64,000 nucleotides of DNA. It comes from Ylistrum balloti (Eukaryota). The stretch spans positions 62,001 to 126,000 of the forward strand of contig NW_026783003.1 in NCBI RefSeq assembly GCF_031769215.1, written 5' to 3'. Both the position numbers and the translations under genes were made by a program. Positions 1-58,037 of the stretch are shown here, in pieces (within the stretch, counting starts at the first letter, position 1; each line of letters starts with the position of its first letter). The notes beneath the pieces were generated by a model. That model saw only the letters and a program-made list of their open reading frames with translations, was not told where the DNA came from and did no database searches.

Positions 1-599
1 ACTTGGTAAGTGTAACTGACCCGTCATTGGATTAAGAAGATGACCCAGTGGTCGTAGCTATAGGGATGTCAAAAGGACTAGGCACTATCATCCTATTTTA
101 AGTTATCAAGCTTAACATGAAAGATAACTAAAATCATTGTTTCCAGATTGTTACATAATACAGATAAATGTTAAACCTGTTACTGACACCATAAAGACTC
201 AAAAGTCTTATGGAAACTAGGAAATGTCTGTAAGACATGAATGTCCACCCTCCTATTCATACAAGTTCTGGAGATACATACTGCAAGTAAGGTTGATAGG
301 GAACAAGACACGATGGGATGGACAGATAGATATAGTTGCATTGAAAATCATCTAAATTACAATAGATTTTAATACTGATATTGTTTAAGATAACTCAATA
401 CAATACAGACACAGACCATAATGTCAGTATGGTTATCGTTAAATATGTTTGTTGTAGTCAGTATAGAATGAGATACACTACTGAGGACAGACAATAATCC
501 AATTCCCACAGAACAGGTGTATTGTCGAAGGATTGTTTGATTGACAGAATATTCAGATGATAAGAAAAAATGGCAGATTTTAAGGAGACAGGATCACTC

Positions 600-889
600 T
601 CAGACAGGAAGCTGCACACTGCCTAGCTTGACCGTTGACCTGCCACCAACAGAGACCGCCCGAACCACCACATATATACGAAGGCCAGAAAGGTTTGTGA
701 TGACTGGTGGAATGTTTAATGTCATAGATGTGGCTCTGGTCTCCATCCATTGGGCAATGTCACCACTACCAAAGTTGCTGCCAGCAGAGACTTCATAGAA
801 AAGCTCATGTGTTGATGTAAACACTGTGTCCCATCCTATTGTCAATTCCTGATTGGAAGAGTCCCAGCTCACATCCAGTGGGGTATCAG
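600..889 (-). CDS. Exon 53 (terminal)
   Basis: gacag|CT DTPLDVSW...VVVRAVSVGGRSTVKLGSVQLPV*; no hydrophobic anchor. Confidence 0.9.
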
Positions 890-3800
890 CTGTCAATAAA
901 ACAACACATTCATATTTAACTGTACATGTGAAACAATACACCAGACTTGAACATTGTATAAAAACATGAGCCATTACAATAATTGAATTTTAGCATGACA
1001 CCAAACACTACCACCAAACACTACCATTGTCATGACACCAAACACTACCATTGGCACGACACCACTTACTACCATTGGCACAACACCAAACACTACCATT
1101 GGCACGACACCAAACACTACCATTTCTGATAGTATTAATGTAACAAATGCAGAAGTCACAAGTGACTTCTTGTATATACAAGATTTGCCCCTGACAATGT
1201 TAAGTATGGTGAATAAAAGTCACAAACCTGTAGCTGTATTCATTAACTGATTTGACCAGCTGGGCCAGGATTGTTTGTTATAATGAAATAAAGATGGACC
1301 TACTTATTCTATTTTGCTTCCTGGCAATTTCTGATTTATGTCTTTAAGCATTTACATATCTAAAGCGCTGACAAACAATTATTCTACATAAATGAACATG
1401 CCCAGTTCATTGTGGGGTAAAATAATTATATTTTGTAGGCTACAATCTGTCACCCCAAGAGGTATACTCCATCATCAAATTTATTATTTGTAGGCAAAAG
1501 ATTACTTATGACCTAAAGCAGAGAGGCATAGAGACACTAGCAATGTACATGACAAGGAATGAGATCTGGCGATGGTTGTTTAACGTCTGCTTAGAGACAA
1601 GCTGTGGTTAGTGAAAAATATTTCAAATCTGAAAAAAATCATAAGATTTGTTGAGAAAGATCAGATTGATAAATTATGAGCGTTAATTTTGCCTTTAAGT
1701 TTCTTTTTTTTTCTGTGGCAACAATTTAAATTTTCACTCACCACTAGTTATTTATAACTAACCTTCGAAGACCCAAGGCTACTTTTAAGCAGACTGTCCT
1801 CCTCTATTTGAAGAAAACATCTTGCAACCCAACATTTTTTAAATGGTAAAGTATTCACGACAAAGTACTTAAGGCAACACATTAATGCCTTTCAGTGCTA
1901 ACACAGTTCTCTGCTGTAATACTGGCAAAAACTAAGAAGAGTTAAACGGTTACCATTTATGGTGGGAGGCTGTGTGAACACTGTAAGATAAGTGTGACTT
2001 TGGACTGATAAGAATTAAACGGTTAACATTAATGGTGGGAGGCTGTGTGAACACTGTAAGATAAGTGTGACTTTGGACTGATAAGAATTAAACGGTTACC
2101 ATTAATGGTGGGAGGCTGTGTGAACACTAAGATAAGTGTGACTTTGGACTGATAAGAATTAAACGGTTACCATTAATGGTGGGAGGCTGTGTGAACACTG
2201 TAAGATAAGTGTGACTTTGGACTGATAAGAATTAAACGGTTACCATTAATGGTGGGAGGCTGTGTGAACACTGTAAGATAAGTGTGACTTTGGACTGATA
2301 AGAATTAAACGGTTACCATTAATGGTGGGAGGCTGTGTGAACACTAAGATAAGTGTGACTTTGGACTGATAAGAGTTAAACGGTTACCATTTATGGTGGA
2401 AGGCTGTGTGAACACTGTAAGATAAGTGTGACTTTGGACTGATAAGAATGAAACGGTTACCATTAATGGTGGGAGGCTGTGTGAACACTGTAAGATAAGT
2501 GTGACTTTGGACTGATAAGAATTAAACGGTTACCATTAATGGTGGGAGGCTGTGTGAACACTGTAAGATAAGTGTGACTTTGGACTGATAAGAATTAAAC
2601 GGTTACCATTAATGGTGGGAGGCTGTGTGAACACTGTAAGGTAAGTGTGACTTTGGACTGAAAAGAATTAAACGGTTACCATTAATGGTGGGAGGCTGTG
2701 TGAACACTGTAAGATAAGTGTGACTTTGGACTGATAAGAATTAAACGGTTACCATTAATGGTGGGAGGCTGTGTGAACACTGTAAGGTAAGTGTGACTTT
2801 GGACTGAAAAGAATTAAACGGTTACCATTAATGGTGGGAGGCTGTGTGAACACTGTAAGATAAGTGTGACTTTGGACTGATAAGAATTAAACGGTTACCA
2901 TTAATGGTGGGAGGCTGTGTGAACACTGTAAGATTAGTGGTGACCTTGGGGCTAGTCTTGTACTGAAGGTTCACAGCGGAAACATCCATGTCGTGTTCAC
3001 CTTCCGACAGGCTCAGACCATGTATCCACACATAGGTCTCCACCTGGTCTGAAGCTAACATCTTCCTCTTTTCACCATCCAGTGTAAACTGTAAACAGAG
3101 GAATTAACATGGGAGACCTCTCCACCAGAAATCAAATCTTTGAATTATTAACAGCTGCTGAGGTATTCATATTTAGGCAGTCTTTCTGATAGTTGAAGAT
3201 AAAACTATTATTTATACAGCATATTCTAAGTTTGTTTTGATATCATATTGGACACCAGAATACTTCCTAATACTGTATAGATGGAGGCTAATATTTTATG
3301 TTTTTTTTTTAATTTGGGCTATTTCACAATGAGTAAATTTTGCACATGTCCATTAACTGATATCCTTGTATACAGGTTTAAAGCATAGATTTTCTTACAT
3401 TTTAATTTATGCTAAATATTTCCCGAGGATTTAATAACCACAAATACAGCAAAATTAATCTACTCACGAATATTAACAACTATGCAGTACATTTTTATAC
3501 TCTTGTTAAAAACCATTCAGGTAAATAGCTTTGTGCTGCTTCTGTTTATGCATATATTGTTTAACATCAGAGCAGCATATCCTTCATTATCCCAAAATCT
3601 GACCCTAGATAAGTGTATTCCTTACTGTAAAGCCCTCAATGCCGATATGGTCTACAAAGCCTGACCACTTCAGACGAACTTGTGTGGTGTCGCCCTGATA
3701 GTGTGGGGCTGCTGCAAATTCCTCCTGTGACAGTCCAATTGTGCTGAACTGAACATTGTCCACTGCTGGACTGAGTCGAGAGATACGGACACCATCTGAT

Positions 3801-6800
3801 GACTTGACAGACTGAACACCAGCTTTGTTCTGACAGCGGATTGTTGAGTAGACAGTCATGCCCTGGACAGAGTCATAGCCAACATCTTGGACCTGTCCAG
3901 TAAACACATTATCAGGCATCCTCATGAAAGTTTGCAGTTCATTGCCGAATGGCTGGTACCCTGGAAAAATGTGATGTTGTTGTTAGCTATATATAAGCAG
4001 GAAAAAAAATCAGATGTGACCATTAACTACAAACAATTTCCATGACATTATGTCAAAAGCTTTCCTCTACATTACATTAATTAATGAATAAAGAATTATG
4101 CTGAATATATCTATCTCTTTGAAACAGCTAATAAGTTAAAGTAGCCCTCTTATTCACAAGCAATATGATCTCTAAACTATTGTACTGTCATGTGAGTTTA
4201 CGGCATCATGAATTGTTACTTATAAAGCTAAATATTGAATTTTACAATCATGCCATGTTTATCTGATTATTCAAAATCTGTTAAAATTTTTCAAAGTTGT
4301 TACTTTATTCTTATCAGGGTTAAAACCACATCATAGATTGAAACAATACTCACCTATAGCCCATTCACAAAAGTCCAATCCTGACTCTGGATCATTGACT
4401 TCCCAGTTGACAAGCACTTCATCTTGTTCCCAGGAGTCTAGGTCCAACTCTGCACAAAGGGAGATATTTTATCTTATCTTATCAAATATACGAAGTTAAA
4501 TAAACTATATCCTCCATGTCAAATAGTTTTGATTTTTATAGAATATAATTTGGAAAGTACATTGTCTTATGTAACTAATTATGGTGTTAGGTATATTGTG
4601 GTTAATATCTACCAGGGTTATAAGATACCAATGTGAAAACTAATCAACCAATGTTTACTCCATCAGACTTAATCACAAATGTTTATTATTCATTCATAGC
4701 AGTGAATAGTGCAAGAAAATGAGAGAAAAATCCCCAAGCATGTCCAGTAAATTCCCATGTATAGCGATTCCTATTTGGATGCAGAATACCAAGTGGTATA
4801 TACCTGGTATATCTCGTTTAATATGGACTGATCATACTCAATATTTTTGACATCTTAAACTAGGTTTCCAAGCAATAGGTTCTTTGTTTTTAGGATAATA
4901 TCATGTTTTCCTTGGACGGTCTTAATAACTCTTGGTGCCGTCTTTCCTTATTATTACATTGTTTTCTGTAACTAATTTGATAAATCTATAAATATCACAC
5001 ACAGTGTTAAGTACTTACCTGTTGTTCCTGTGCCTGAAAAATAAATATAAATACTCAAGTTAATTTAATAATATGCATTTCATTTAAGTAAGTCTTAAAG
5101 AGACAAACAAGAAAACTAGGTCAGACTAATAACACTTTTATCAAATTTCAACTGGTCTTTATATGTTCTTTAAATGTTGGATATTTTCCCTCCTAATAAG
5201 AATAAGAACTAATCATAGGGAGGCAACATATATTCTTTGGAACAAAACTTTTCCGAAACTGTCACATTGTGAAAGAATAGCAAGGTGAAGGTCTATCATC
5301 AATGTGAAGATGTACATACCTGAGCCATCATTGACAGCAGTGATGACAGGTGCAGTGAGATCTACCAGGATTGGTGAGGAATACGCTATACCTTGTAGCC
5401 CTGAAGTACTGGTAGCCACCACAGTGATGTATACCTCAGATTTGTGAACAAGGGTCACAGTGTTGTTGTAGGCAAATCTCTGCTGCCCAACACTGCGGAA
5501 ATCCTGAACTTGTGTCCCTCCCTTTTTGTAACCTGAAGTAGTTAAAATAAAACAACAATATACTCATTTATGGTTTGTTTTTGGGTTCATCATCCCTTGA
5601 ACAGTCAGGGTCAACTTCTCTGTTGATTATCTTATAAAATGCATGGAAGGCCTGTAGTATGCCATCCAGAGCAAATTAGGGTATTGTGTCTATCCCTAAA
5701 CACAACCATGACAGCACAGACTGATCTGTTTTTCATATATATTATGTCACCTGTCAATACTTACCTATAGCCCACAGGTACTCTGTGATGTGACTCTCTG
5801 CCTCCACAAAACTCCAAGAGCCATGTATTGATCCCCATTCATGCAAAAACACCACATGCGCATTTACAGTGTCAGAGGTTGTGCTGTCAGTATGTGAAAC
5901 ATGATGTACCTGAATGTCGTCGATCAGTATTCCAGTACCCCTGTCCAAACTACCAAGTCTTAGAGTTGCTGAAGTACTGGACATGACAAAATAAAATGTG
6001 TGGTGATGCCAGGTGATGATCTCTCTTGTATCTGAGTGGTGGTCATCAAGACGGTAAGCCTTGGTGTACATGAGGAAGACATGTCGATCACCGAACTCCA
6101 CAAAGCCCTCCTTATTAGCGATGACTGAGTCCACGCTGGGAAGATGAGAGGTGACAAACGTGACCCTGTACAGGCCGTCTACCTCAAGTCCACTGATGTC
6201 CTGGGACAGTGCACCTCGAACTATCACCATGGACCTACCATCTCTTGCCAGGTTGGTGTCAGATGACACAACGGCAACACATGTGTCCCAGGTACTTGTC
6301 CATTGCTGTGGGAGGTGTGAGGAATTCACATTACATATATCCGTGTTGTTGACATTGTCCCAGGAAATGGAATGGCCGTTACTGTTTTCAAATGACGGGT
6401 TTGTTGCCAGATTTACAGTGTCATAGTGGACCAGCTGGGATGGAATTGGTGGGGTGGTGTCCACTGTGACCCCATCTGATACAGCTGTATCAGACTGTTG
6501 TCCCAGACCATCTACAGCATACACCTTATTGTATACTCTCATACCTGGAATTACAGAATAATTTTTCACTTTTTATAGGGTATCAGTAGTGACTGTAATT
6601 CACTGAAGCACATAATTTTAAAGAGGGATAAAATGGAACATTTCATCTTTTAGTTCTTAAAATCAAGATAGGATTCATATTATAACATACCACTATTAAG
6701 AAAAATTACAGCTACAGTTAACATCATGTAAAAACCATCACAAAATAGTATGAATTGTTTGATACGATGATGAAAATCATAACTTTGCATATATGGGCAC

Positions 6801-9800
6801 ATTTATCTATATAATATGAAATAAAATAACTTTGAAACTTTGAAATGCTGCATATTGTTAGATTTACCATGAGAGAGCGATGTTGTCAGGTTAGCTCTGA
6901 CAGCAGTGCGGAGACCTACAGCTTCCCACCGTTTCACTGAACACTCTGTCTTGCTTTGGGTGCTGCCCACACACCAGTAATACGTCTTCACTCCAGCGTC
7001 AAGGTCCACAAATCCATGCCACGTTGCCCCCAAAAGTGTGGTACTACTTTGGTACTCTAAGTCATGAATACCTGTATTACAAACATATCATACTTGATGT
7101 ATTGATAACAATAACCTCATAGACATTAACATATACAAAAGGCCAAACGTTATCTATTGTTTCAAGAATTTTTTTTCAGATTAATTAGGTTTGCACACCA
7201 GTAAAATATTCCAACATGAAATCTAGATTTCTTTATGAAACATGTCCTGTAACCTTCATGACATTAATAAGATAGGCAGAATATAATCACTTAATGTAAA
7301 TGTATTAGAAAAAGAATCAAAGACGATTCAGCATTGCATAATCTGTAAATCCACTCTCAGCTGTTAAATAATAACAAATAAAATTAACACTAAGTCCCAC
7401 AGAGATATTGGCAGCTACAATTGTTTGTTCTTAACTTGTCCTTTAAAAGTTGGATCTTTCCCTTCTCTAATCTGTTTTTGCTCTTAAATATATTAAATTT
7501 GAATATTCTTAAGAAATAGTCATAATCATCTTTTTAACTGCCAAATCCAAGACTATCTGTTATTTATATTGTTTCTCTGATCAGTCTAAAAATCCAAAAG
7601 GGCACACCTAGGGACCAAGGGGAACCTACAAATTAAATTTGAGGAAGATCCATCTAGCATTTCCTTAGAAATAGTGATAACTAACTTTTGTTTTCAAAAT
7701 TTGCGATGGTAGCCTGTCAATCATTTTATTTTCCTGTTCAATTTTAAAATCAAGTATGCTATGACTGGGAACCAATAGGAATTTAAATTGAGATTCAATT
7801 AACAGCCATCCATTACAACTGTACTTCTCTAGTAATGCCAATTTTTTATTGACAAAATAAATGATGGCTAGCTGTCAGTCATTTTAATTTTCTGACAAGT
7901 CCAAAAATCAAACTTGCGGTACAAGAGAACAACGGAAACCTACATATGAAATTTGAGGAAAAAGTTCACTTTGTATTTCTCAGGACATAGCAATAACAAA
8001 AACTGTTTAAGGCCCATCATCTGATGATGGCAAGAAATTGGCTGCAGAAATACAGTTGATGTATTACAAGGGTTCTTTTGTGATTCCAATGTCCACAGTA
8101 AATTTACTCAAACAGTTTATTAGTCAAAACAACAATTACAGAATTCCACATCACCAACATCATACACTTGTATGTGACATGAGTCATACATTTTTCACCA
8201 CAAGATATAGATGTTAATGGTCACACAGTACAAACCTCTCCTGGTACTGCATATAGGGCAGTGAAGTTCTGATCCTAAAACACAGTATCACAATATCATG
8301 CAGATACAGTCACATCTATCATTCTCCAAGAAGTTGTGACATCCAATTCAATTTGTAACTAACAACATCATCACTCCAAGCACCAAATCAAACAAAAATC
8401 ACCTTAAGTATATTTGGCAAAAATCTCCTCGCATTTTGTGATAGTGAATACCATACACAGAATAGGTGGCAGGGACAAAGGTTAATTGAAGTCTGTGAAG
8501 AAGAGGGGAATGTGATTATCTGAGGAAGGGAATTTCATGTAGAAGAAGTAGTGACCAACTGAACACCATAAAAGTGAAGAAAAGGAGAACTAAGGACAGG
8601 GATGGAAAGAGGGTATGAAGAATGGAGGAGAGTGTAGAAATAAACAAGCATACTGATATTGCTGAAGAAGTACATAGGTCAACTTTCAGCATCCCCAGGC
8701 TACAGCACTGTCAAAGATTTTCTAAAATAGTAACAATGACCTTGACAAAATAACCTGTAACTCAGGTCACAGTGTAACAACCTTGTCAAAGATCATTCGA
8801 TGTATTATAAGAGTGTGAAGTTTGATGAGAATCCCTAAAGGAAAGAAGCCACTGGAGCGCTGACAATGATTTTCTTAAAATAGTAACAGTGGCCTTGACC
8901 CAACAACCCTGAGATTCATGCCTGTTTATATATATGTTTATTTGAAGCTTTAAAAGATTGTGAAGTTTCATGAGGCTCTCTACTGGAATGAAGCTGCTAG
9001 AGTAGTGACAATGATTTTCTAGAGATTGTACCAGTGACCTTGACACAACGACCCTGAAATTCATACTTGTCCAAGATATTTTGATGCTGAATAACTTTCT
9101 ATGTGTGCAGTTTATAGAGAATCCTTCAAGGAGTGAAGCTGCTTGTCCCATCACCTACTGAGTATTAAAATACATAGGTTAGAAGAATATGAAAAGAATT
9201 AGAATTTGGATATCAAAGAAAGTGCACAAATTTAGATAAAAGGAAAATTATTTAAAGAATGAATGAAGGCAGTATTAAAAGATGGGGGAATATCCAACTA
9301 AGGAACAGAGACAGTGGAAAAGGATTTGTATCACAACAGCAGAGAATGATAAGGAAGGGATGAGGATGGACAAAATAAAATGTCTATTTCTACAGCTACA
9401 CTTACCTGTGCCATCATACACTTTACCCATGACTGGCACTACATTGTCAATCACAAAGCCGTCTGACGACTCTGTGTGGTGCAGACCCGAGAAGCTATAG
9501 GCCACTACGTTGCTGTAATATTTGATACGAGTGTCCAGATTGAAGCGTGTAAAGTTGTAATTAGTGGTGGTTCCAGGGTAACTGGCTGCTACTATGTAGA
9601 CGTCATCACCTGGCAACATATTCATCACAGAAGATTTTTATTAACACAAGATAAAAAGCTCAAGGTGTGTGAAGGTTTCCAGTTGGTTCCTAACAATGAC
9701 CTACATGGTAAAACAAAAAAAGACAATTCTTGATAATATCAATTTATAATACATAAACCCTGAAACATACATACCTCCAGGCATGGTGCTGAGATATAGA

Positions 9801-39800: not shown

Positions 39801-42800
39801 AGACGAGAATATTACTATGTGTACAATTCTTAATTCCTTAAGCTGGTAAAGCAAGAAATTCAATTATTTTGAAAAGCTGAAAATAATGATATTGTTGAAA
39901 ACAAATGTTACACACGTTTGCAGCTCTTTTTTCCATCAGTAGCAGAGGTGTACGCCCGCCAGTACTGCTCCTCTCTAATCTCCCCATCACAGTAGGCACA
40001 AATGTTGTCCCAGGGAGACGTACACTTTCTATGCAGGCAGTGGTCAATCTTTGGACAAACTGAAAACAGAATATCATACAATTATTTCTATTGTTGCACA
40101 CAATGCTTACCTGTTGTACCCATTGATATTGTTTTGTTATTGTTCACATATACCTGTTGTAAGCATGGTTTACTTGTCGTTTTCCGTGACCTGCTTTTCT
40201 CATTGTTTACCTGTCATTGTTGTTTTTCATTTACCTTTTATGAATATTGCTTAACTGTTGTACCCATTGACATTGTTTTGCTATTGTTCTCATATACCTG
40301 TTGTAAGCATTGTTTACTTGTCGTTTTTTACGTGACCTGCTTTTCTCATTGTTTACCTGTCATTGTTGTTTTTCATTTACCTTTTATGAATATTGCTTAA
40401 CTGTTGTACCCATTGACATTGTTTTGCTATTGTTCTCATATACCTGTTGTAAGCATTGTTTACTTGTCGTTTTCCGTGACCTGCTTTTCTCATTGTTTAC
40501 CTGTCATTGTTGTTTTTCATTTACCTTTTATGAATATTGCTTACCTGTTGTACCCATTGACATTGTTTTGCTATTGTTCTCATATACCAGTTGTAAGCAT
40601 TGTTTACTTGTCGTTTTCCGTGACCTGCTTTTCTCATTGTTTACCTGTCATTGTTGTTTTTCATTTACCTTTTATGAATATTGCTTAACTGTTGTACCCA
40701 TTGACATTGTTTTGCTATTGTTCTCATATACCTGTTGTAAGCATTGTTTACTTGTCGTTTTCCGTGACCTGCTTTTCTCATTGTTTACCTGTCATTGTTG
40801 TTTTTCATTTACCTTTTATGAATATTGCTTACCTGTTGTACCCATTGACATTGTTTTGCTATTGTTCTCATATACCAGTTGTAAGCATTGTTTAGTTGTC
40901 GTTTTCCGTGACCTGCTTTTCTCATTGTTTACCTGTCATTGTTGTTTTTCATTTACCTTTTATGAATATTGCTTAACTGTTGTACCCATTGACATTGTTT
41001 TGCTATTGTTCTCATATACCTGTTGTAAGCATTGTTTACTTGTCGTTTTCCGTGACCTGCTTTTCTCGTTGATTACCTGTCATTGTTGTTTTTCATTTAC
41101 CTTTTATGAATATTGCTTACCTGTTGTACCCATTGACATTGTTTTGCTATTGTTCTCATATACCAGTTGTAAGCATTGTTTACTTGTCGTTTTCCGTGAC
41201 CTGCTTTTCTCATTGTTTACCTGTCATTGTTGTTTTTCATTTACCTTTTATGAATATTGCTTAACTGTTGTACCCATTGACATTGTTTTGCTATTGTTCT
41301 CATATACCTGTTGTAAGCATTGTTTACTTGTCGTTTTCCGTGACCTGCTTTTCTCATTGTTTACCTGTCATTGTTGTTTTTCATTTACCTTTTATGAATA
41401 TTGCTTAACTGTTGTACCCATTGACATTGTTTTGCTATTGTTCTCATATACCTGTTGTAAGCATTGTTTACTTGTCGTTTTCCGTTACCTGCTTTTCTCA
41501 TTGTTTACCTGTCATTGTTGTTTTTCATTTACCTTTTATGAATATTGCTTAACTGTTGTACCCATTGACATTGTTTTGCTATTGTTCTCATATACCTGTT
41601 GTAAGCATGGTTTACTTGTCGTTTTCCGTGACCTGCTTTTCTCATTGTTTACCTGTCATTGTTGTTTTTCATTTACCTTTTATGAATATTGCTTAACTGT
41701 TGTACCCATTGACATTGTTTTGCTATTGTTCTCATATACCTGTTGTAAGCATTGTTTACTTGTCGTTTTCCGTGACCTGTTTTTCTCATTGTTTACCTGT
41801 TGGACTCATTATTTACTTGTATCCAATGTTTGCTGTTTAATTTGGTTGTTTTCCCCTGTTGACAAGACTATACTCACTATCACACATGCCACCGTTGGCG
41901 TAGAATCCATCATTACAGCTGGAACACTGGTCAGGAGCAGTACAAGTACCTCCACTATGTCTCTGTCTCACGCCAGATCGGTACTGTATGTAGTCATTCC
42001 TATAATACTGTGTACATGCACCTCCATCACCCGGATTTATCCGCTTGTTACAAATGGCTGTGGAAAAAAAAGTTTGGTTTGTGGGAATATTCAAACACTC
42101 AAAAGGCCCTGCTTTTAAAAACAATTAAAGAGGTAAAGAAAGATCTCTGAAACAATTTAAGGAAAATTCCAAGATGGCATTAGCTGCACTTCCTGGAAAA
42201 AATTGAACTTCCACCTAATGAATAGTGTAAAAATGAAAAGCAGATAAATAGCATCTTTCTACACAAATTTAGATAAAAAAACTGCCTCATACAGCTGTTT
42301 TGTCCTTCTAAGAAATCTAGGAGGCGAATGTGAGCAAGATAAAAAGTGATCAAAGAAATGTCAAAAGAGGTACACTAACCCCAAAATTCAATCAATTTCA
42401 ATAACGCAAAATCTAAAAAAATATATATTGATAAGTACATGTGTATATATCTTCTTATAAAATGAATCCTGTTTTTATATCAACATTCAAACAATATGCT
42501 ACCATCGTGTTCAATCCATGAAATAATTTCTAAGTCTTTAAAGGAAGGACAAATGCCAACATAAAAGGTAAGTTTGCATGACTTCCATTTCAGGAATTTA
42601 ATCCAACAACTGTGGAAAGCAACAAACACAGGGCTATGATCAAACTTTTCATATTTTTCCTAAATATTCTTTCCTTTTAATGATATGTCCTTACCATGGT
42701 TGCAGTTTGTGAAATCGTCATACCAGTTCTGGTATCCGTTACAGCAGAAGTAATTGTAAATTGTCTTATCTCTGTGAACAAAGAAGCAAATTATTATCAG

Positions 42801-45800
42801 ATTGTTCAACACATTCTGTAAAAACATTAATTTTTGATGCAAGATTTTTTGTTGTTGATTTAATGGGTACTCTTAATCCACAAATTGTTAAATTAGTATA
42901 CCATGTAAGCAGATTAATTGTCCACAGACGGCCATCTTGGATTTTGATATAATAGTTTGTTTTGCTAATTAATAAAATAATTATGTAGGCAAAAAACAAG
43001 TGTCAATGAATGAATGATTTTTTGAAAACCCATAAAAATTGAGACCCACAATAATTTGTAATTCTACAGTAGTTTATCCGAGTGGTATCCTCTAGTCATC
43101 TAATATATGGTAATAGATAATAGTTCATCAAAACCAAAGGCAAAGAAGTGCATTACATGCATTGTCAAGGAAAAAGATCTGATAATCAATTATATTGTAT
43201 AATTATCACATTTGTTTATATTAAGATGATGCTATGTTTGAACAATATTTTGATTACATGTAAAAACTTATTTTAAATTTTTAGACACTGATAAAAAGTA
43301 TAAAAATGTCTGATGATTTTAGTATTTTCAAGATGTAGGCAGGTCACGACATGGCTGATATCAAGTCAACAAATGAAATCAGGCGAGTTGGCAACACTGT
43401 AACTTACAATCATTGTGAAAATGTCACTCCATTAGAATGTAGTTCAAATGAAAAGATCATTATTTGTTATAAAAATAGCTTTCAATTACTTCTATAATTA
43501 AAACTAATTTAGGATTTTTTAACTTTTTATTTTTCAAAATTTAGAAAGTTGGCTTATACATTTAAGAAATAACTTCAATTGGGAATGGACACCATTACAT
43601 GTCCCAAAAAGCCCTTAAATTTTACTAGAAATTGTATGAAACACAAGAAATCATCTAAAATGCATAATTTCGTTGTAGATAAGTGGAGGATAACATATTT
43701 GTTAGTTGGACAAATATCTAACAGATGGGTGCAATACCATTTAAAGAACTGAAAACAGTATAAAGAAGAAGACTTTGCTCATTTTTGGCTTCAACTGGTC
43801 ATCAATTCACATGTATTGGAGAGAATTGGTATCTATAACGAGTAAAGGTTGGTGATGTCTTCATCTCTAAATATAAATTCAGTACCTAATGGGGACAGGG
43901 TCTCCAGGGGCCTGTCTCTTTTAATTCTAAGGTTATCCTTGTTTCTGAAACACTTTCAGTTTTATTTGCATGAGTGTAACTATATTTGGTAAACAGTTTG
44001 TCTATTAATACTTACGTATATCTGGTACACCGACCCCACTTCCAGAAGCTACATTTTGAATAATACTTCGTTTCCTCAGTGTGAGTGCTCACACAAACAT
44101 GGTTTCTGAAACATTCAAACATTAGATTTAATTTAAAAGAAATGTTTCTTTGATAATAATTCAACATATCTGCATAAGCAGCAGTGACAACTGGCTTTCA
44201 CATGATATCTCCTACCAGGGATACATGGAGTTATCTACTCTTTATAAAAAATGTACATCCCTGAAACATGGATGTGTATCCATCTCGTCTCTCGTGGACA
44301 CAGTCCTTCAATTCTGAAACGAGATGGAGACCAGTGGCGTAGCAAAACATTTTTAAGAGTGTATGCTTTCAAGAGAGGATCCAAGGGCGAAGCCCCGGTT
44401 AAGGGGGTATAGGGGCGCAGTAAGGTTAAAAAAGTAGGGCAAATATATCTCAATGGAATTCGAGTGTATGTTTAAGCATATAAGCATACATTATTGCTAC
44501 GCCTCTGGAGACAAATCGTTTTCTAGTATCACAACGCCATTGACAAAAGCATTTGGACAACATACTTTCTCCTCGACTGTGGATACAAACCATTTCCCGC
44601 CAAAACTTTCAAGGGACGTCACTCTTTCTTAAATAAATGATGCTTCTATATATTAGAGTGAGAGACACAGATAAATGACATATAAGCGTAAAATGTTATA
44701 TATAAAAACAGCTCTTTTCCTGTGTAACTAGAGTTTATGTTATTTTCATAATATGTCATTTAAAATACATAACATTAACATATTATGATACAAACTATAT
44801 CCGACGGGAAATATATATAAAAAATCTAATATAGCGTAAATATATCTAAACCTGCCGAACGTAATATCTGCACCCTACAGGAAAGTCTTCTTGTTTTGAC
44901 GGACAGCATGACTAGAATTAAGTAATTTAACTCAATTTCAAGGATATGTACATAAACAAGCTATCAATTTTATTCCAATATATTATTTCAATCCATGCGT
45001 CTATATTTTTTCTCGATGCAAAGGATGAGACACCCAACCAATGGATTATGACAGACATTAAATGATAAATACATGCAGTGTGATGTAATCAATCATATTT
45101 TACTATCTATACATGCGAAAAAAATTGTTTTGATCAAGTCCTCCTTTACACAGCCAAGGAAACAGCCACGGACTTCGTCATACACGAGGTGGTCCCCTAA
45201 CGATATGTCTGCTACCTGTTGAAAATCGGCCAAGAAATAACAGTGTTTGTACGGACACTAGTACTGGTACCGCGTGCTAATTCAGACAATGCATTTCCTA
45301 ATTATAGATCTGTTTCTTATTTTGCTGAACAGTTCTTTGTTTTATGAACAGACATGTACCTCAAAGCTTGAATCAGATGTGTTTCTTTGTTACATCGTAA
45401 TAACTTGACGTGGATTGAATTAAACATAATTGCAAAATTTCGATTTTATTTCTTTTAATAAGACGAATCAGTGGAAATTGTATAAATTGATAAGTCCAGA
45501 TAATACGTATCTGTAATAAGGCTTATTGAGAAACAATATACAGACATGCACATAGCGTACACGCTCGTAAACAATGTGTTCTACATAACATCATTCTCAT
45601 ACGGATCTATCCTAACAACCGAGTTTTATGTCCCGGTTTCACAAGTGGGCCAAAACTAGAAGGTTTCACCATTGATCGCTTTAAAAATTGTATATGTCAC
45701 TGTTACTATAAATAGAATATGTATGACCCAGTCACGTCCTTTCTCTGAGACTAACTTCATTTTCGTTGTATTATCGTTATAAAACTCCATGCACATGCTT

Positions 45801-47616
45801 ACAGCCATGAATTCTTGTAAATGTTTGCGTCAAACTTCTGTGATAAATAACAATGTTAACATTACCTCTGGTTTGAAAAGAAAGAAAGAACGAGAAAGAA
45901 AGAAATACGAAAGATCTAAAGGCATTTTCATAATATTGATTGGTTATATAACAAGGATCTTATTTAGAATCTGGGAACAGGAATATGTTCCTGTAAAGAT
46001 CAAGAGGCACTAGATTTTCGCCAATAGTGTAGGATGAGGGCGATTGAGCTTGAGTAGATCTGCCATTTTCAGAATTCAGTATTGAATTATTCTGCAAAAC
46101 ACGAGACAATGACGTCATCTCAAAGAGGAAATGGTCTATACACTTATTGAAAAATCTCTGTGGAATAAAAACCAGGACAGTGTCGTGCCGCTTGATCTTA
46201 CTTAAGATCCCATATATACGTGTATATGATCCCATCAAATGGCTTTGTCACGTTCTACGTGAACCCATACGTTACTGATTAAAGGTTTAACTTGTAAGGT
46301 ATGTGATGGGAGTCGAGATAAATCCCATATTTGCTCCAAACACACGACGGCATTTAACTATTTCACCAGTGTAGATACATATACCGGGTCGGCTTGTTCT
46401 GGGGGTTTTACATGACACCCACCAATGTTAGGTTAAACCTCCAATTCAGCCCTCTTTAACATTATTTAAAAACAACAAACAAACACGTGGTTAACACAAG
46501 CCCGGGGCTATTCAACAGGAATATTTTATCATGTAATCTTGAAAATTCCAAATAATGAATGAGAGAAAAAAAAAAACAAAGAAAAACAAACCTTTATACA
46601 TGTATGACATATTTTGATGACCTTCCTAAAACATTGAATCATGCACATGCGTTATATTAGCACTTCGAATTCACGTAAAATCCTCATTATGGTTTACTTA
46701 TTTTTACTTATATTACTCTCAAACGTGAAAAAGAATCCATTATAGTCTTCAGCAGTCTTCTATATGTACATGTAGGGAAGGGTTTTACAATGCCAGAATG
46801 TGGTCTGCTCAGTTAGGTTCTATTACATAGTGACAATTCGCGGACACGGGGATCCTGACCAGACGAGAATATAACTGTTATATAAGAAGGGGAATTGGGG
46901 TTAGAGGGACTCGAAGGTGGAGGAGGCAGCGGTGGTAAAGGGTGGGATCAGATGTGGATTTGGAAGAGGGGTTATGATGGTAAGGGGTAAGGTGGTAGGG
47001 GGGTTTGTGAGAGAGAGAGAGAAATATATGATAATGGTACGGGATGGGTTGAATGGGGGTTGAGGGAGAAAGGGGCGGTGGTGGTAAGGGATAATAAGGG
47101 AAGAGGGTTTAAATGAGGAAGAGGCGGTGATGGTAAAGTGTATGGGGAGACAGGGATTTGGATTAGGGGAAGTGATGATAGTAAGTAGATTCGTGGGACT
47201 GAGGTTTGAGGGAGGAAGAGGCGGTGATGGTAAAGGGCGTGGTGGGATGATGGTTTGAGGATGTGGGAAGTAATGGGCAGAGATAACGTGGAATCTGGAG
47301 GTGAGGGATTTGAAGGAGGAGGCAGTGATGGTAAGAGCTAGCGAACGTCTACTCCAATTTAGACCGACTGGATATATATATATACGAAAACAATATATGA
47401 TACCTAAGATGTCTGTTCTGGACATATGATGGTATTTACTATATAGATATAGGTTTCATTGGAGTAGGAAATGGAGGAACAGCATACTCACCCAGGTCCA
47501 TCAAGTGGGTCATTATAGACCATTGGGAAGCCACCACTGGTCCCTAAGTCATGGAATGGTCCGGCCTGAGTCAGACCAAAGGACAAAACACACGTTAATG
47601 ACCAAAGCGTCAACAT
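600..47616 (-). CDS. Complete 53-exon gene encoding a ~3441-aa secreted EMI/EGF + FN3-like-repeat + galactose-binding-like protein (uncharacterised)
   Basis: Manually spliced exons, all GT-AG, phases matching at every junction; total 10326 nt (divisible by 3) from ATG 47616 to TGA 600-602; the same beta-sandwich motif recurs across exons. Product naming is inferred from motifs, no database search. Confidence 0.88.
1005..1125. repeat. ~24-bp minisatellite (gcacgacaccaaacactaccattg), about 5 copies
   Basis: Direct inspection; produces the 8-aa repeats in ORFs 974-1159 and 1032-1250. Confidence 0.85.
1940..2940. repeat. 73-bp tandem array, 14 copies, overlapping the exon 52 donor
   Basis: ggttaccattaatggtgggaggctgtgtgaacactgtaag...; units start at 1948...2165, 2238...2820, 2893. 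Confidence 0.95.
2899..3088 (-). CDS. Exon 52
   Basis: FTLDGEKRK...VFTQPPTIN G|gtaacc; phase 0-1; its 3' end is the first unit of the 73-bp array. Confidence 0.87.
3626..3960 (-). CDS. Exon 51
   Basis: YQPFGNELQTF...SSDGV...KWSGFVD...EGFT; phase 1-0. Confidence 0.9.
4354..4449 (-). CDS. Exon 50
   Basis: LDLDSWEQ...WEVNDPESGLDFCEWAI; phase 1-1. Confidence 0.88.
5019..5033 (-). CDS. Exon 49 (15-nt microexon, candidate)
   Basis: tttatttttcag|GCACAGGAACAACAG|gtaagtac; strong splice sites, phase 1-1, frame-neutral so it cannot be proven from frame alone. Confidence 0.65.
5320..5532 (-). CDS. Exon 48
   Basis: YKKGGTQVQDF...DLTAPVITAVNDGS; phase 1-1. Confidence 0.9.
5765..6544 (-). CDS. Exon 47 (780 nt; contains the galactose-binding-like/DUF642-like domain)
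   Basis: MRVYNKVYAVD...DTTPP...NLATNPSFE...LSQDISGL...IDDIQV...EYLWAI; phase 1-1. Confidence 0.92.
6868..7071 (-). CDS. Exon 46
   Basis: IHDLEYQSST...ATWHGFVDLDAGVKTYYWCVGS; phase 1-1. Confidence 0.9.
7540..8030. mobile_element. Degenerate satellite-like / Helentron-associated (HINE-like) repeat
   Basis: Recurring aaatttgagga...atttc...ga.atag...ataac subunits; boundaries approximate; family assignment from recall. Confidence 0.4.
8690..9160. mobile_element. Degenerate ~150-bp subrepeat element (HINE/satellite-like)
   Basis: gtaaca.tg.ccttgac-like motifs at about 8731, 8883 and 9028. Confidence 0.5.
9406..9609 (-). CDS. Exon 45
   Basis: DDVYIV...SSDGFVIDNVVPVMGKVYDGT; phase 1-1. Confidence 0.9.
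9775..9919 (-). CDS. Exon 44
   Basis: VTESNH...DMDFLEYQPFMVSW...STMPG; phase 0-1. Confidence 0.88.
10407..10549 (-). CDS. Exon 43
   Basis: KPILSEGISYAFFIRVWY...SSGVTIMTTPP; phase 1-0. Confidence 0.87.
10973..11094 (-). CDS. Exon 42
   Basis: FEWSVCFE...WHDAG...LVPR; phase 2-1, donor gttcgt. Confidence 0.8.
11661..11781 (-). CDS. Exon 41
   Basis: NPNSPLDVKDFD...LQPL TG|gtaagt; phase 1-2. Confidence 0.85.
12175..12349 (-). CDS. Exon 40 (Cys-rich)
   Basis: VGLSSS...RCDSYSCLGHCVCAPQDNVCPYSHLDPC; phase 0-1. Confidence 0.88.
12710..12985. repeat. 54-bp minisatellite, about 5 copies
   Basis: aatgttacttatatagaattgaggatggaagccctgctggaggtctatcagtgt; starts directly after the exon 39 donor. Confidence 0.92.
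12990..13133 (-). CDS. Exon 39
   Basis: VTGIPVS...HMWAVNT |gtatgt; phase 0-0. Confidence 0.85.
13553..13731 (-). CDS. Exon 38
   Basis: MFSIKTNH...SWIGFADLHS...SDLNK; phase 1-0 (an in-frame alternative donor lies 12 nt further on). Confidence 0.85.
14126..14279 (-). CDS. Exon 37
   Basis: VNGIVRDY...ACNGAGIC...DSSPPSR; phase 0-1. Confidence 0.9.
14480..14845. repeat. Degenerate ~60-bp tandem copies of the exon 36 3' end plus donor
   Basis: The copy at 14537-14590 matches exonic 14788-14841 at 46/54 nt with no indels. Confidence 0.8.
14788..15017 (-). CDS. Exon 36
   Basis: LYVDTVSNGFTVDNTAPV...QLSSTK; phase 1-0. Confidence 0.88.
15070..16835. repeat. 38-bp minisatellite, about 46 copies, filling intron 35
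   Basis: ggactggcctacagacagtctgtgatgtatatgtattt; local 152-bp (4-unit) higher-order repeat. Confidence 0.95.
16856..17064 (-). CDS. Exon 35
   Basis: TYIGAKWYGFSDPQSG...VRAYNKA; phase 2-1. Confidence 0.9.
17472..17658 (-). CDS. Exon 34
   Basis: FVLSMK...TACNTANLC...DNSPPTAGAVQDG; phase 1-2. Confidence 0.9.
17863..18021. mobile_element. Foldback/MITE-like element with nested inverted repeats
   Basis: Outer arms gtaggagtgttttca / tgaaaacactcctac (15 bp perfect); inner arms gtttcaccagtca / tgactggtgaaac (13 bp perfect). Confidence 0.55.
18349..18625 (-). CDS. Exon 33
   Basis: AYNGAGL...DLTPPVIGHVYDG...YWEGFHD; phase 0-1. Confidence 0.92.
19326..19509 (-). CDS. Exon 32
   Basis: WKEVFSDLESGIQRYMWAVGSEPG...YYITIK; phase 2-0. 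Confidence 0.9.
19565..19800. repeat. 30-bp minisatellite (gacatgtcatacaggtagacatgatagagc) with decayed flanking copies
   Basis: Direct inspection; produces the TCHTGRHDRA and MSTCMTCRSI repeats in the ORF track. Confidence 0.85.
19877..20009 (-). CDS. Exon 31
   Basis: KDFAGRSTTQMSHAVIIDVTPPIK...; phase 1-2. Confidence 0.87.
20644..20760 (-). CDS. Exon 30
   Basis: TTAGGNDMVDFTDVG...GHTYYATVT; phase 1-1. Confidence 0.9.
20985..21090 (-). CDS. Exon 29
   Basis: TILTDIYVNWETFVDVEE...YNVSI G|gt; phase 0-1. Confidence 0.85.
21448..21665 (-). CDS. Exon 28
   Basis: ttttag|AT KEYMNTEF...CSDGVVVDLTPPIPGNVWIG...YQ; phase 1-0. Confidence 0.87.
22286..22540 (-). CDS. Exon 27
   Basis: GALKNGYG...SIKCGNT; phase 1-1. 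Confidence 0.87.
23047..23239 (-). CDS. Exon 26
   Basis: LTFELSLTGEMD...QQYDE |gtaagt; phase 0-1. Confidence 0.88.
23588..23752 (-). CDS. Exon 25
   Basis: LVVQMDRFYDPD...YEWAIT...VTASK; phase 0-0. Confidence 0.88.
24418..24653 (-). CDS. Exon 24
   Basis: caacag|GT IWTVVRDF...YRVALKLCAG...GGVEK; phase 1-0. Confidence 0.85.
24921..25065 (-). CDS. Exon 23
   Basis: DNRVRCDEERDFQ...HWAIEEEDAAG; phase 0-1. Confidence 0.85.
25245..25279 (-). CDS. Exon 22 (35 nt)
   Basis: cttacag|TG DDGTLFHHHEQ |gtaagt; needed to bridge phase 1 to phase 0. Confidence 0.78.
25598..25733 (-). CDS. Exon 21
   Basis: TYYFTVEAVTSVGSVSVTSDGVTV...KPCNFT; phase 0-1. Confidence 0.87.
26033..26230 (-). CDS. Exon 20
   Basis: DIEDSDFQTDQSRLQVRW...IAIGTTSGG...HWQ; phase 0-0. 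Confidence 0.9.
27130..27386 (-). CDS. Exon 19
   Basis: HSEYGVDVQQY...YYVTVRAENSVGL...DVPVG; phase 1-0. Confidence 0.9.
27657..27810 (-). CDS. Exon 18
   Basis: TLGPFLLDTTAPTFSG...FYSFAI G|gtgaga; phase 0-1. Confidence 0.9.
28105..28477 (-). CDS. Exon 17
   Basis: AKATVVSDLDLFP...TETENIQ; phase 2-0. Confidence 0.88.
28744..29021 (-). CDS. Exon 16
   Basis: VIETTD...YFVTVVAFNHALEPSVPVCSDGVTID; phase 0-2. Confidence 0.9.
29263..29472 (-). CDS. Exon 15
   Basis: ITIDVSPPHTGVVHDG...HWEGFFDRESG; phase 0-0. Confidence 0.9.
30002..30220 (-). CDS. Exon 14
   Basis: DLSACQATYGGNPGDCYCTPYQGC...YIEIQVTNIAQLVTTLRKK; phase 0-0. Confidence 0.88.
30742..30865 (-). CDS. Exon 13
   Basis: IEWESYDFHSGIDSLYWKLYD...SQRAD; phase 2-0. 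Confidence 0.87.
31953..32410 (+). mobile_element. Non-autonomous Helentron-associated (HINE/pearl-like) element
   Basis: AACAAGAG start, two ~157-bp internal subrepeats (32072/32229), (GGAC)n microsatellite at 32341-32363, GC-rich end before an A-run; matches the layout described for bivalve pearl/HINE elements. Confidence 0.6.
32595..32898 (-). CDS. Exon 12
   Basis: VVDFWVSFEV...DNTAPVIRDLWL...; phase 1-2. Confidence 0.9.
33150..33500 (-). mobile_element. Probable interspersed repeat remnant
   Basis: ttattagg...tttcttattattcttcttct start and aatatggccaccatgacgtc / aatatctcgaaaacc motifs resembling bivalve dispersed repeats; from recall only. Confidence 0.35.
34062..34410 (-). CDS. Exon 11
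   Basis: ATFALTTPGMYMLLLHVIDRAGN...IDHVN; phase 0-1. Confidence 0.9.
34750..34908 (-). CDS. Exon 10
   Basis: PSITFSWDGWADDLSGLDKYEYEV...SQSS; phase 0-0. Confidence 0.87.
35393..35800. repeat. 71-bp minisatellite, 6 copies
   Basis: gtagggacaggtgacaaaattcacatac... at 35393, 35464, 35535, 35606, ~35682, ~35753. Confidence 0.9.
35881..36094 (-). CDS. Exon 9
   Basis: LYFDMSVRNGGYV...APDLTED |gtaagt; phase 2-0. Confidence 0.87.
36682..36811 (-). CDS. Exon 8
   Basis: STAVWPYYLRNC...SNFMHND; phase 1-2. Confidence 0.85.
37100..37620. repeat. Diverged ~170-bp satellite-like subrepeats, about 3 copies
   Basis: (a/g)gc.aatcagg...cctcattaaa at about 37110, 37282 and 37449. Confidence 0.7.
38200..38490 (-). 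CDS. Exon 7
   Basis: IDAPAITDQQ...IKFSLYR |gtaagt; phase 1-1. Confidence 0.88.
39056..39169 (-). CDS. Exon 6 (EGF-like)
   Basis: ACSWRSDSTRCYPGKCSSETSDSCVCMQGFTGHHCDE |gtaagt. Confidence 0.9.
39916..40059 (-). CDS. Exon 5 (Cys-rich)
   Basis: tttcag| CPKIDHCLHRKCTSPWDNICAYCDGEIREEQYWRAYTSATDGKKSCK |gtgtgt. Confidence 0.88.
40103..41800. repeat. 144-bp tandem array, 12 copies, filling intron 4
   Basis: gtacccattga anchors at 40116, 40260, 40406 ... 41702; 288-bp dimer higher-order repeat in the middle. Confidence 0.95.
41878..42057 (-). CDS. Exon 4 (EGF-like)
   Basis: ICNKRINPGDGGAC...GGTCTAPDQCSSCNDGFYANGGMCD |gtgagt. Confidence 0.9.
42695..42771 (-). CDS. Exon 3 (EMI-like, second half)
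   Basis: cacag| DKTIYNYFCCNGYQNWYDDFTNCNH |gtaagg. Confidence 0.88.
44016..44105 (-). CDS. Exon 2 (EMI-like, first half)
   Basis: tttcag|A NHVCVSTHTEETKYYSKCSFWKWGRCTRY AC|gtaagt. Confidence 0.85.
44332..44507. mobile_element. 176-bp MITE with 14-bp TIRs and a 5-bp flanking duplication
   Basis: CAGTGGCGTAGCAA ... TTGCTACGCCTCTG (1 mismatch); GAGAC on both sides. Confidence 0.8.
46890..47340. repeat. Purine/G-rich degenerate repeat in intron 1
   Basis: Recurring gagga.gaggc.gtgatggtaa motif with strong G/A skew on the + strand. Confidence 0.75.
47492..47616 (-). CDS. Exon 1 (signal peptide)
   Basis: MLTLWSLTCVLSFGLTQA-GPFHDLGTSGGFPMVYNDPLDGP, then GG|gtgagt; in-frame TGA upstream of the ATG; phase 2 fits exon 2. 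Confidence 0.85.
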
Positions 47617-57921: not shown

Positions 57922-58037
57922 CCTGGACCGTGAATAAAGAACGAATATGGATAAGGGAAATCAATCGCTTCGCTCCTTCTAATGAGAATGAACACCGACC
58001 ACGTGATAGTCCAGATGATCAGGGTCACTTTTCCCAT
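57922..58037 (-). CDS. Candidate alternative first exon (second signal peptide) of the same gene
   Basis: MGKVTLIIWTITWSVFILIRRSEA-IDFPYPYSFFIHGP, then GG|gtaagt; phase 2 and GPG junction as in exon 1; too short for the ORF track. Confidence 0.65.

Follow-up and report, generated by a model that had tools for sequence, protein, structure and literature searches.

The stretch of DNA analyzed here—64,000 nucleotides of the scallop Ylistrum balloti (assembly GCF_031769215.1, contig NW_026783003.1, positions 62,001 to 126,000), hereafter called the window and numbered from its first letter—holds one complete minus-strand gene of about 55 exons. Judged by its sequence, it represents, in the scallop, a conserved and wholly uncharacterized family of giant secreted proteins. 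The order of parts along the chain is a signal peptide, about 220 Cys-rich residues with one putative EGF-like unit, a head of about 200 residues, and 21–23 modules resembling the fibronectin type III (FN3) domain, with a jelly-roll domain set in four modules before the C terminus. From this architecture we infer a function as an extracellular scaffold or tether with a glycan-binding side module—a reading that, taken as a whole, we regard as probable, if only just.

The window consists of AT-rich eukaryotic DNA, whose open stretches carry a recurring protein pattern on the minus strand only: W-x-GF-x-D-x-SG...Y, then YY-x-V-x-A-x-N, then SDG-x-x-VD-x-TPP. The longest intron-free stretch (272 residues; 5757–6572, minus strand) served as query against 1.8 billion protein representatives and retrieved 217 relatives, many of them 2,800–3,550 residues long and bearing the matching piece at about 80% of their length. 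Searching the window by tblastn with 68 relatives gave 1,509 high-scoring segment pairs (HSPs), none of them on the plus strand, which merge into 39 exon cores from 39170 to 606; the Sinanodonta protein P0020 is colinear across these cores. The gene model was rebuilt blind to the exon list of an earlier note on this DNA. For each pair of adjacent cores, every phase-compatible combination of donor and acceptor received a score, based on splice-site matrices and on how well the joined peptide aligned with as many as 20 relatives. A simple gene finder had returned 47–75 exons depending on its penalty setting, with exons overrunning into introns and tandem repeats, and the junction-by-junction choice was used instead.

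Without ortholog guidance, this procedure yields 52 GT–AG exons with a coding sequence of 10,314 nucleotides for 3,437 residues, free of internal stops from the ATG at 47616 to the TGA at 600–602. The RefSeq protein P0216 of Argopecten irradians (3,462 residues) aligns with this 52-exon model over its full length, from Met1 to the end, with an identity of 78.7%. In this alignment, the few gaps led to three skipped micro-exons (26519–26545, 8236–8274, and 5019–5033)—all present in the window with good splice sites—and to one donor shifted by 9 nucleotides. The final model comprises 55 exons on the minus strand, all GT–AG, with 10,404 nucleotides and 3,467 residues and neither stop nor frameshift; its residues 1–3466 align with residues 1–3461 of P0216 at 79.4% identity with seven gap positions. 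The earlier note had likewise described one complete gene for a long secreted protein, which the end-to-end alignment to P0216 and the single open frame bear out. Its version of 53 exons, 10,326 nucleotides, and 3,441 residues has the same ATG and TGA and is also one open frame, but differs from ours by a few small, possibly alternative exons.

A model of this size might be an artifact, either by merging two neighboring genes or by reading through a decaying pseudogene. It does derive from the genome alone, and three micro-exons and one donor differ between our two models. Yet it runs for 10.4 kb without stop or frameshift, all introns are GT–AG, and it is colinear from end to end with full-length proteins of many phyla. 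Moreover, the Logan contig L009 (SRR14492776_9840; 11,147 nucleotides)—by appearance the assembled full-length transcript of a different species—carries an uninterrupted family open reading frame (ORF) of 3,429 residues at 138–10427, with 41% identity to the scallop protein. An artifact is largely refuted by these observations, and we give it next to no credence.

Colinear relatives of about 3,200–3,500 residues are found in oysters, mussels, snails, an annelid, a nemertean, hemichordates, echinoderms, and amphioxus, and the model is colinear with full-length proteins of seven phyla in one to three HSPs each. Model residues 55–3399 correspond to residues 48–3381 of 3,412 in amphioxus, 132–3400 to 35–3273 of 3,304 in a sea star, 36–3399 to 17–3224 of 3,259 in an annelid, and 38–3435 to 27–3186 of 3,187 in the apple snail; the proteins of a nemertean, a brittle star, and an acorn worm are likewise colinear. 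With oysters and mussels, the identity amounts to 47–49% over the whole length. The named orthologs—P0216 of Argopecten irradians, LOC105348718 of Crassostrea gigas (P0191), LOC118405866 of Branchiostoma floridae (P0056), and LOC110977889 of Acanthaster planci (P0155)—agree with the scallop protein in length, in how the parts are ordered between signal peptide and last module, and in where the chain ends at the C terminus. A length of about 3,400 residues and an order of parts that are kept from scallop to amphioxus point to strong constraint.

The shared C-terminal end also bears on the possibility of a membrane-anchored adhesion receptor with a transmembrane exon beyond the model or the window. 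Many long FN3 arrays of animals are indeed receptors. In this gene, however, the last module is followed by the stop codon, at the very residue at which the Argopecten protein also terminates. Twelve orthologs of seven phyla—several of them with signal peptides—likewise terminate at this module and show no hydrophobic tail. Nor is there any module-like open frame on the gene's strand in the 10 kb that follow the stop. A receptor is therefore highly improbable.

The roughly 150 named relatives inspected are "uncharacterized" or "hypothetical" with few exceptions. These are automatic domain names in UniRef, the labels ADGRL2 and SCARF2 on amphioxus paralogues—which read as automatic, too—and a bacterial protein from a metagenome-assembled genome (MAG) named for a PQQ-binding beta-propeller. 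A literature search by accession and locus name, covering main texts, returned nothing on family proteins. The orthologs thus add no functional knowledge, since none has been named, described in a paper, or assigned a function. That the protein has no recognizable name, as had been stated before, holds: neither the relatives inspected nor the literature searched offer a characterized counterpart, and the curated names of the full-length matches all read "uncharacterized." The protein does not stand alone; numerous public annotations already contain predicted members of the large multi-copy family to which it belongs.

Copies of the family are multiple in bivalves, sea stars, and amphioxus, and some paralogues bear extra N-terminal domains. 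On the same stalk, relatives carry a C-type lectin (mussel), SUEL lectin and cbEGF (amphioxus), TSP1 (acorn worm), PLAT (abalone), three SRCR (brittle star), or PAN (nemertean). These differing N-terminal domains in paralogues and orthologs suggest a stalk that stays constant while the binding head it presents can be exchanged. All animal relatives that were inspected stem from aquatic invertebrate groups. One amphioxus entry, P0160 (Branchiostoma floridae C3YYL8, 6,805 residues), holds two tandem family copies, and the scallop N-terminal region matches it at about 18–540 and 3743–4126; this entry is probably a gene-model merge in the amphioxus annotation.

Multiple copies and heads like C-type lectin, SUEL lectin, SRCR, PAN, and TSP1, which are typical of invertebrate recognition proteins, would also suit a soluble pattern-recognition protein or opsonin, as would secretion without an anchor. 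Here, microbial glycans would be bound through the lectin-like module and the N-terminal head, with the long stalk as a bridge to hemocytes. The scallop copy itself, however, bears no recognizable lectin head but just Cys-rich and EGF-like sequence, and the scallop genome holds only two copies of the jelly-roll exon. Furthermore, both length and architecture show tight 1:1 conservation from phylum to phylum. Such conservation, along with the low copy number, agrees somewhat better with a structural role than with a fast-evolving immune family. Immune recognition is the main rival to the structural reading; we consider it unlikely, though worth keeping in sight.

In exon 1, a signal peptide, MLTLWSLTCVLSFGLTQA, is directly visible, with a hydrophobic core of about 14 residues followed by a putative cleavage site between TQA and G. 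The highest Kyte–Doolittle mean over 19 residues is 1.48, which speaks against any transmembrane segment. By these sequence measures, the protein is secreted and has neither a membrane anchor nor a hydrophobic tail. The mature protein of about 382 kDa is acidic with an isoelectric point (pI) of about 4.9; N-x-S/T sites number 22, and 24 Cys fall within residues 1–240. The signal peptide, the Cys-rich N terminus, and the missing C-terminal anchor described in the earlier note are all recovered.

Giant, acidic, glycosylatable, and secreted proteins of aquatic invertebrates might as well be tissue-specific structural secretions, as components of a gamete coat, of an adhesive in larvae or adults, or of the matrix of shell or byssus. 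Against this stand the orthologs of amphioxus, acorn worms, and nemerteans, which have neither shell nor byssus; a role in shell or byssus only cannot be ancestral, since shell-less phyla have orthologs. In addition, no proteome paper in the literature searched names any member by accession or locus name. Such a tissue-specific role strikes us as very doubtful.

Within the Cys-rich region, the domain assignments proposed earlier fare less well. In Pfam, exon 6 gives one EGF_Teneurin match of 23.5 bits, just below the cutoff of 24.3, besides weaker matches to EGF_laminin, hEGF, and EGF_2, and the EGF-family scores of P0216 are sub-threshold at 17–19 bits; calling this region EGF overstates a single near-threshold match. 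Pfam searches for EMI (PF07546) were negative both at E up to 1, for exon 2 and exon 3 (each on its own) and the N-terminal regions of P0056, P0155, P0037, P0175, P0063, and P0033, and at E up to 0.1, for P0216:1–260. A CCxGY motif is all that the region shows. The EMI call is hence not supported, as neither the 79%-identical Argopecten ortholog nor the other orthologs searched bear a Pfam EMI.

The head (residues ~236–440) is conserved in deuterostome, annelid, and nemertean orthologs. Folding the head of the sea-star ortholog by AlphaFold2 (AF2) from a shallow alignment resulted in an enlarged β-sandwich with a predicted local distance difference test (pLDDT) of 76 and a predicted template modeling score (pTM) of 0.71. 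The best VIA-align matches, at Z ~9, are bacterial adhesin repeat domains, transglutaminase C-terminal barrels, RbmA, and FN3 domains, and Foldseek found no clear match (best E 1.3e-3, template modeling (TM) score ~0.3). According to this model, the head would be an enlarged Ig-like β-sandwich.

Most of the protein is made of the repeated modules. An iterated hidden Markov model (HMM) seeded with one module detects 21 modules of about 110 residues each in the 52-exon model. On the 55-exon model, the same HMM gives 23 matches, two of which are very weak and one of those overlaps the jelly-roll domain; for this reason, the count is given as 21–23. The repeated β-sandwich modules seen before do exist, but their number is 21 rather than about 17. 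A family profile of 28 modules from orthologs matches FN3 domains of contactin-2, contactin-1, fibronectin, and a monobody in the PDB (best E 2.8e-5), and Pfam fn3 lies above the whole-protein cutoff in the orthologs P0029 (60 bits), P0021 (46 bits), and P0056 (42.9 bits). In ten single exon-like stretches of the window, Pfam found nothing significant, fn3 included, because the introns split the modules. P0216 gave no Pfam fn3 match either, and one of the 28 single modules reaches E < 0.1. These profiles suggest that the modules are strongly divergent members of the FN3 fold class. The former FN3 assignment is therefore right as to the fold class, given the PDB matches, but in the scallop proteins the modules have diverged beyond what Pfam fn3 recognizes.

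This extracellular protein has its long tandem array of FN3-type β-sandwiches in common with fibronectin, tenascins, contactins, and usherin; as in tenascin, EGF-like sequence, putative in the scallop protein, precedes the array on the N-terminal side. In contrast to these classical FN3 proteins, the match of the modules is weak—the family profile scores 27.6 bits on whole contactin-2 and about 16 bits on the best single domain. The scallop protein also lacks any fibrinogen, laminin, or Ig part and any transmembrane segment, and bears instead a DUF642-like jelly roll, which the classical proteins do not have.

A much closer match to the modules comes from bacteria. When an HMM derived exclusively from animal modules is applied to the giant bacterial MAG proteins P0054 (Acidimicrobiia) and P0087 (Schekmanbacteria), each module scores about 100 bits—more than the median of the animal family's own modules and far more than classical animal FN3. 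Both bacterial proteins share with the scallop protein the ~110-residue subtype VD-x-T-PP...W-x-GF-x-D-x-SGI-x-x-Y...YY-x-TV-x-A-x-N-x-AG. They differ from it in being intron-less, in their homogeneous repeats, and in lacking the EGF-like region and the head. The match of the bacterial proteins to the 272-residue query is confined to its FN3-like part and lies outside the part resembling a carbohydrate-binding module (CBM). Pfam and NCBIfam label the bacterial repeats as Ig_J_second, Ig_Rha78A_N, Big_13, and OmpL47-type, whereby OmpL47-type matches of NCBIfam occur in the bacterial giants and none in an animal segment searched.

The shared module subtype may reflect an old transfer or an old shared subfamily. 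In its most far-reaching form, the former would mean that an early animal gained the stalk—SGI-Y type FN3-like array plus DUF642-like jelly roll—from a giant bacterial surface adhesin before the protostome–deuterostome split, with introns and fused EGF-like or lectin heads acquired afterward. We think this scenario quite unlikely; if true, it would constitute an old, phylum-spanning bacterial-to-animal transfer of a whole multi-domain scaffold.

The second building block of the stalk is the jelly roll, which covers about 180 residues within the 780-nucleotide exon 49 (core ~5877–6428, residues ~2868–3051). Folding this exon by AF2 from an alignment of 35 sequences gave a pLDDT of 82.7 and a pTM of 0.77. 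Foldseek matches in the PDB are CBM61, CBM16, CBM4-2, CBM22, and the hyaluronan-binding module 4d0q, with E 1e-6 to 1e-5 and TM-scores by target of up to 0.67, and the nearest entries in the ESM Atlas are bacterial and plant DUF642 clusters with TM-scores of 0.64–0.73. The alignment displays a near-invariant NPSFE motif and invariant aromatic residues. On these grounds, the insert is predicted to adopt a β-jelly-roll fold, and the carbohydrate-binding-like insert of the earlier note stands, as the predicted structure matches CBM and DUF642 folds. Pfam PF04862 was found neither in the window exon nor in P0216:2850–3050; it reaches 26.5 bits in P0056 against a cutoff of 27 and is precomputed on several orthologs.

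With DUF642 (PF04862) of plant cell walls and bacteria and with CBM4/16/22/61, the domain thus has in common the β-jelly-roll fold and an NPSFE-type motif in the N-terminal strand. Plant DUF642 proteins are small and reported to regulate pectin methylesterase (PMC9694414); the scallop domain is, unlike these, a single insert in an animal protein of 3,467 residues. A review describes the DUF642 family as exclusive to seed plants (PMC6651502), and the literature on DUF642 among the matches listed deals with plants or bacteria, none with animals.

Two loci of the scallop genome bear a jelly-roll exon. The second one, with 39% identity, lies on contig C8 and marks a second family member (C8:277772–301138, plus strand), with the jelly-roll exon at 300386–301138 and module exons over at least 23 kb upstream. 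The module subtype itself is present at at least seven other loci of the same genome, some of them in long intron-free frames. Beyond C8, these number at least six and include C407:602–661 kb, C836:6–44 kb, C511:565–576 kb, C759:394–403 kb, C1035:11–23 kb, and C45:822–850 kb, with L007:1853–5308 (minus strand) listed alongside them. There, the module is often found in long intron-free frames, of up to 1,155 residues, and one ORF of 1,152 residues has only a weak Pfam fn3 signal; these further loci look like other, intron-poor gene families made up of this module.

Combining these elements, the protein would be exported and form a rod on the order of 80 nm if fully extended. The jelly-roll side module would, going by its fold, bind a glycan, and the N-terminal Cys-rich and head region might bind a partner or oligomerize. 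A rod with a glycan-binding module and N-terminal partner binding would thus make a scaffold or tether in the extracellular matrix, mucus, or cell coat. The roles put forward in the earlier note (mucus or matrix, adhesion, or opsonin-like recognition) are likewise conjectural.

Several points weigh against this. The gene model derives from genomic sequence and homology, and over the whole length of the 79%-identical P0216, Pfam places no domain above threshold. The FN3 fold of the modules was assigned by sequence profiles, as the structure predictions covered the jelly roll and the head, and the latter resembles only generic Ig/FN3-like β-sandwiches. Glycan binding is taken from the fold alone, and similar jelly rolls are also enzymes—HpiC1 cyclases appear in the same match list—or protein binders. 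Also, the literature searched holds no report on expression, localization, or binding for any family member.

This family of giant proteins is strongly constrained and yet nameless and without a paper, and in scallops it shows not a single Pfam domain above threshold. The checked gene model, the domain map, and the placement within the family provide a target for expression, glycan-binding, and structural studies. A DUF642-like insert in an animal departs from the seed-plant exclusivity ascribed to that family, and the repeat subtype is shared with giant bacterial proteins. The family also allows a possible bacterial origin of an animal matrix scaffold to be put to the test. Should its function prove to be no more than ordinary scaffolding of the matrix, the gain would consist chiefly in improved annotation of hundreds of "uncharacterized" entries.

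The individual exons were defined by homologue HSPs, junction scoring, and the P0216 alignment; they are numbered as in the 55-exon model, all lie on the minus strand, and residue ranges are given after the coordinates. Exon 1 (47492–47616; residues 1–42) begins with the ATG at 47616, continues after the signal peptide with GPF..., ends in the donor GGG/gtgagt, and aligns to P0216 from Met1. Exon 2 (44016–44105; 42–72) is Cys-rich, runs from phase 2 to phase 2, corresponds to the first half of the former "EMI," and matches P0216 43–71 at 86%; exon 3 (42695–42771; 72–98) bears a CCNGY motif. Both were included because they form the only well-scoring chain that joins exon 1 in phase 2 to exon 4. 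The latter (41878–42057; 98–158) is Cys-rich with weak EGF-like Pfam matches, exon 5 (39916–40059; 158–206) is Cys-rich as well, and exon 6 (39056–39169; 206–244) is EGF-like and covered by eight homologue HSPs. The head domain is split into three parts, encoded by exon 7 (38200–38490; 244–341), exon 8 (36682–36811; 341–384), and exon 9 (35881–36094; 384–455).

Module 1 begins with exon 10 (34750–34908; 456–508), followed by exon 11 (34062–34410; 509–625), exon 12 (32595–32898; 625–726), exon 13 (30742–30865; 726–767), and exon 14 (30002–30220; 768–840). Exon 15 (29263–29472; 841–910) encodes the first half of a canonical module. Thereafter come exon 16 (28744–29021; 911–1003), exon 17 (28105–28477; 1003–1127), exon 18 (27657–27810; 1128–1179), and exon 19 (27130–27386; 1179–1264). 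Exon 20 (26519–26545) is a micro-exon of 27 nucleotides reading SDKNAVPYT, where P0216 has SDKDRVPFT. Exon 21 (26033–26230; 1274–1339) and exon 22 (25598–25733; 1340–1385) lead to another micro-exon, exon 23 (25245–25279), whose 35 nucleotides are required for the frame and give a gap-free alignment to P0216 at this place. Exon 24 (24921–25065; 1397–1445) precedes exon 25 (24418–24653; 1445–1523), for which an alternative donor exists 9 nucleotides upstream at 24427.

The array continues with exons 26 (23588–23752), 27 (23047–23239), 28 (22286–22540), 29 (21448–21665), 30 (20985–21090), 31 (20644–20760), 32 (19877–20009), and 33 (19326–19509). The best-conserved modules are reached at exon 34 (18349–18625), with up to 256 homologue HSPs, and are followed by exons 35 (17472–17658), 36 (16856–17064), 37 (14788–15017), 38 (14126–14279), 39 (13541–13731), and 40 (12990–13133). 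Exon 41 (12175–12349) includes a small internal Cys-rich stretch; exons 42 (11661–11781), 43 (10973–11094), 44 (10407–10549), 45 (9775–9919), and 46 (9406–9609) come next. The micro-exon 47 (8236–8274; 39 nucleotides) reads GSELHCPICSTRR, with GSELHCPICSMKR as its counterpart in P0216.

After exon 48 (6868–7071), the 780-nucleotide exon 49 (5765–6544; 2829–3089) closes one module, encodes the DUF642/CBM-like domain in full, and opens the next module. Exon 50 (5320–5532) is followed by micro-exon 51 (5019–5033), whose 15 nucleotides are frame-neutral and possibly alternative; it has strong splice sites, and P0216 bears five residues at this position. Exons 52 (4354–4449), 53 (3626–3960), and 54 (2899–3088) lead to exon 55 (600–889), which encodes the last FN3-like module and the TGA stop at 600–602; the orthologs end at the same module.

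A candidate alternative first coding exon lies at 57922–58037 on the minus strand. It reads MGKVTLIIWTITWSVFILIRRSEAIDFPYPYSFFIHGPG and has a gtgagt donor; with its 116 nucleotides, it ends in phase 2 like exon 1, and as both end in GPG, either could splice to exon 2. The last intron harbors a 73-bp tandem array (1937–2949; 13.9 copies, 96% matches), whose first copy overlaps the last 51 nucleotides of exon 54 together with its donor. Hence, about 13 extra copies of this exon end and GT donor are found within the intron. Further intronic tandem arrays, at 15064–16835 (38 bp in 47 copies) and 40104–41800 (144 bp in 11.8 copies), create spurious long open frames on both strands.

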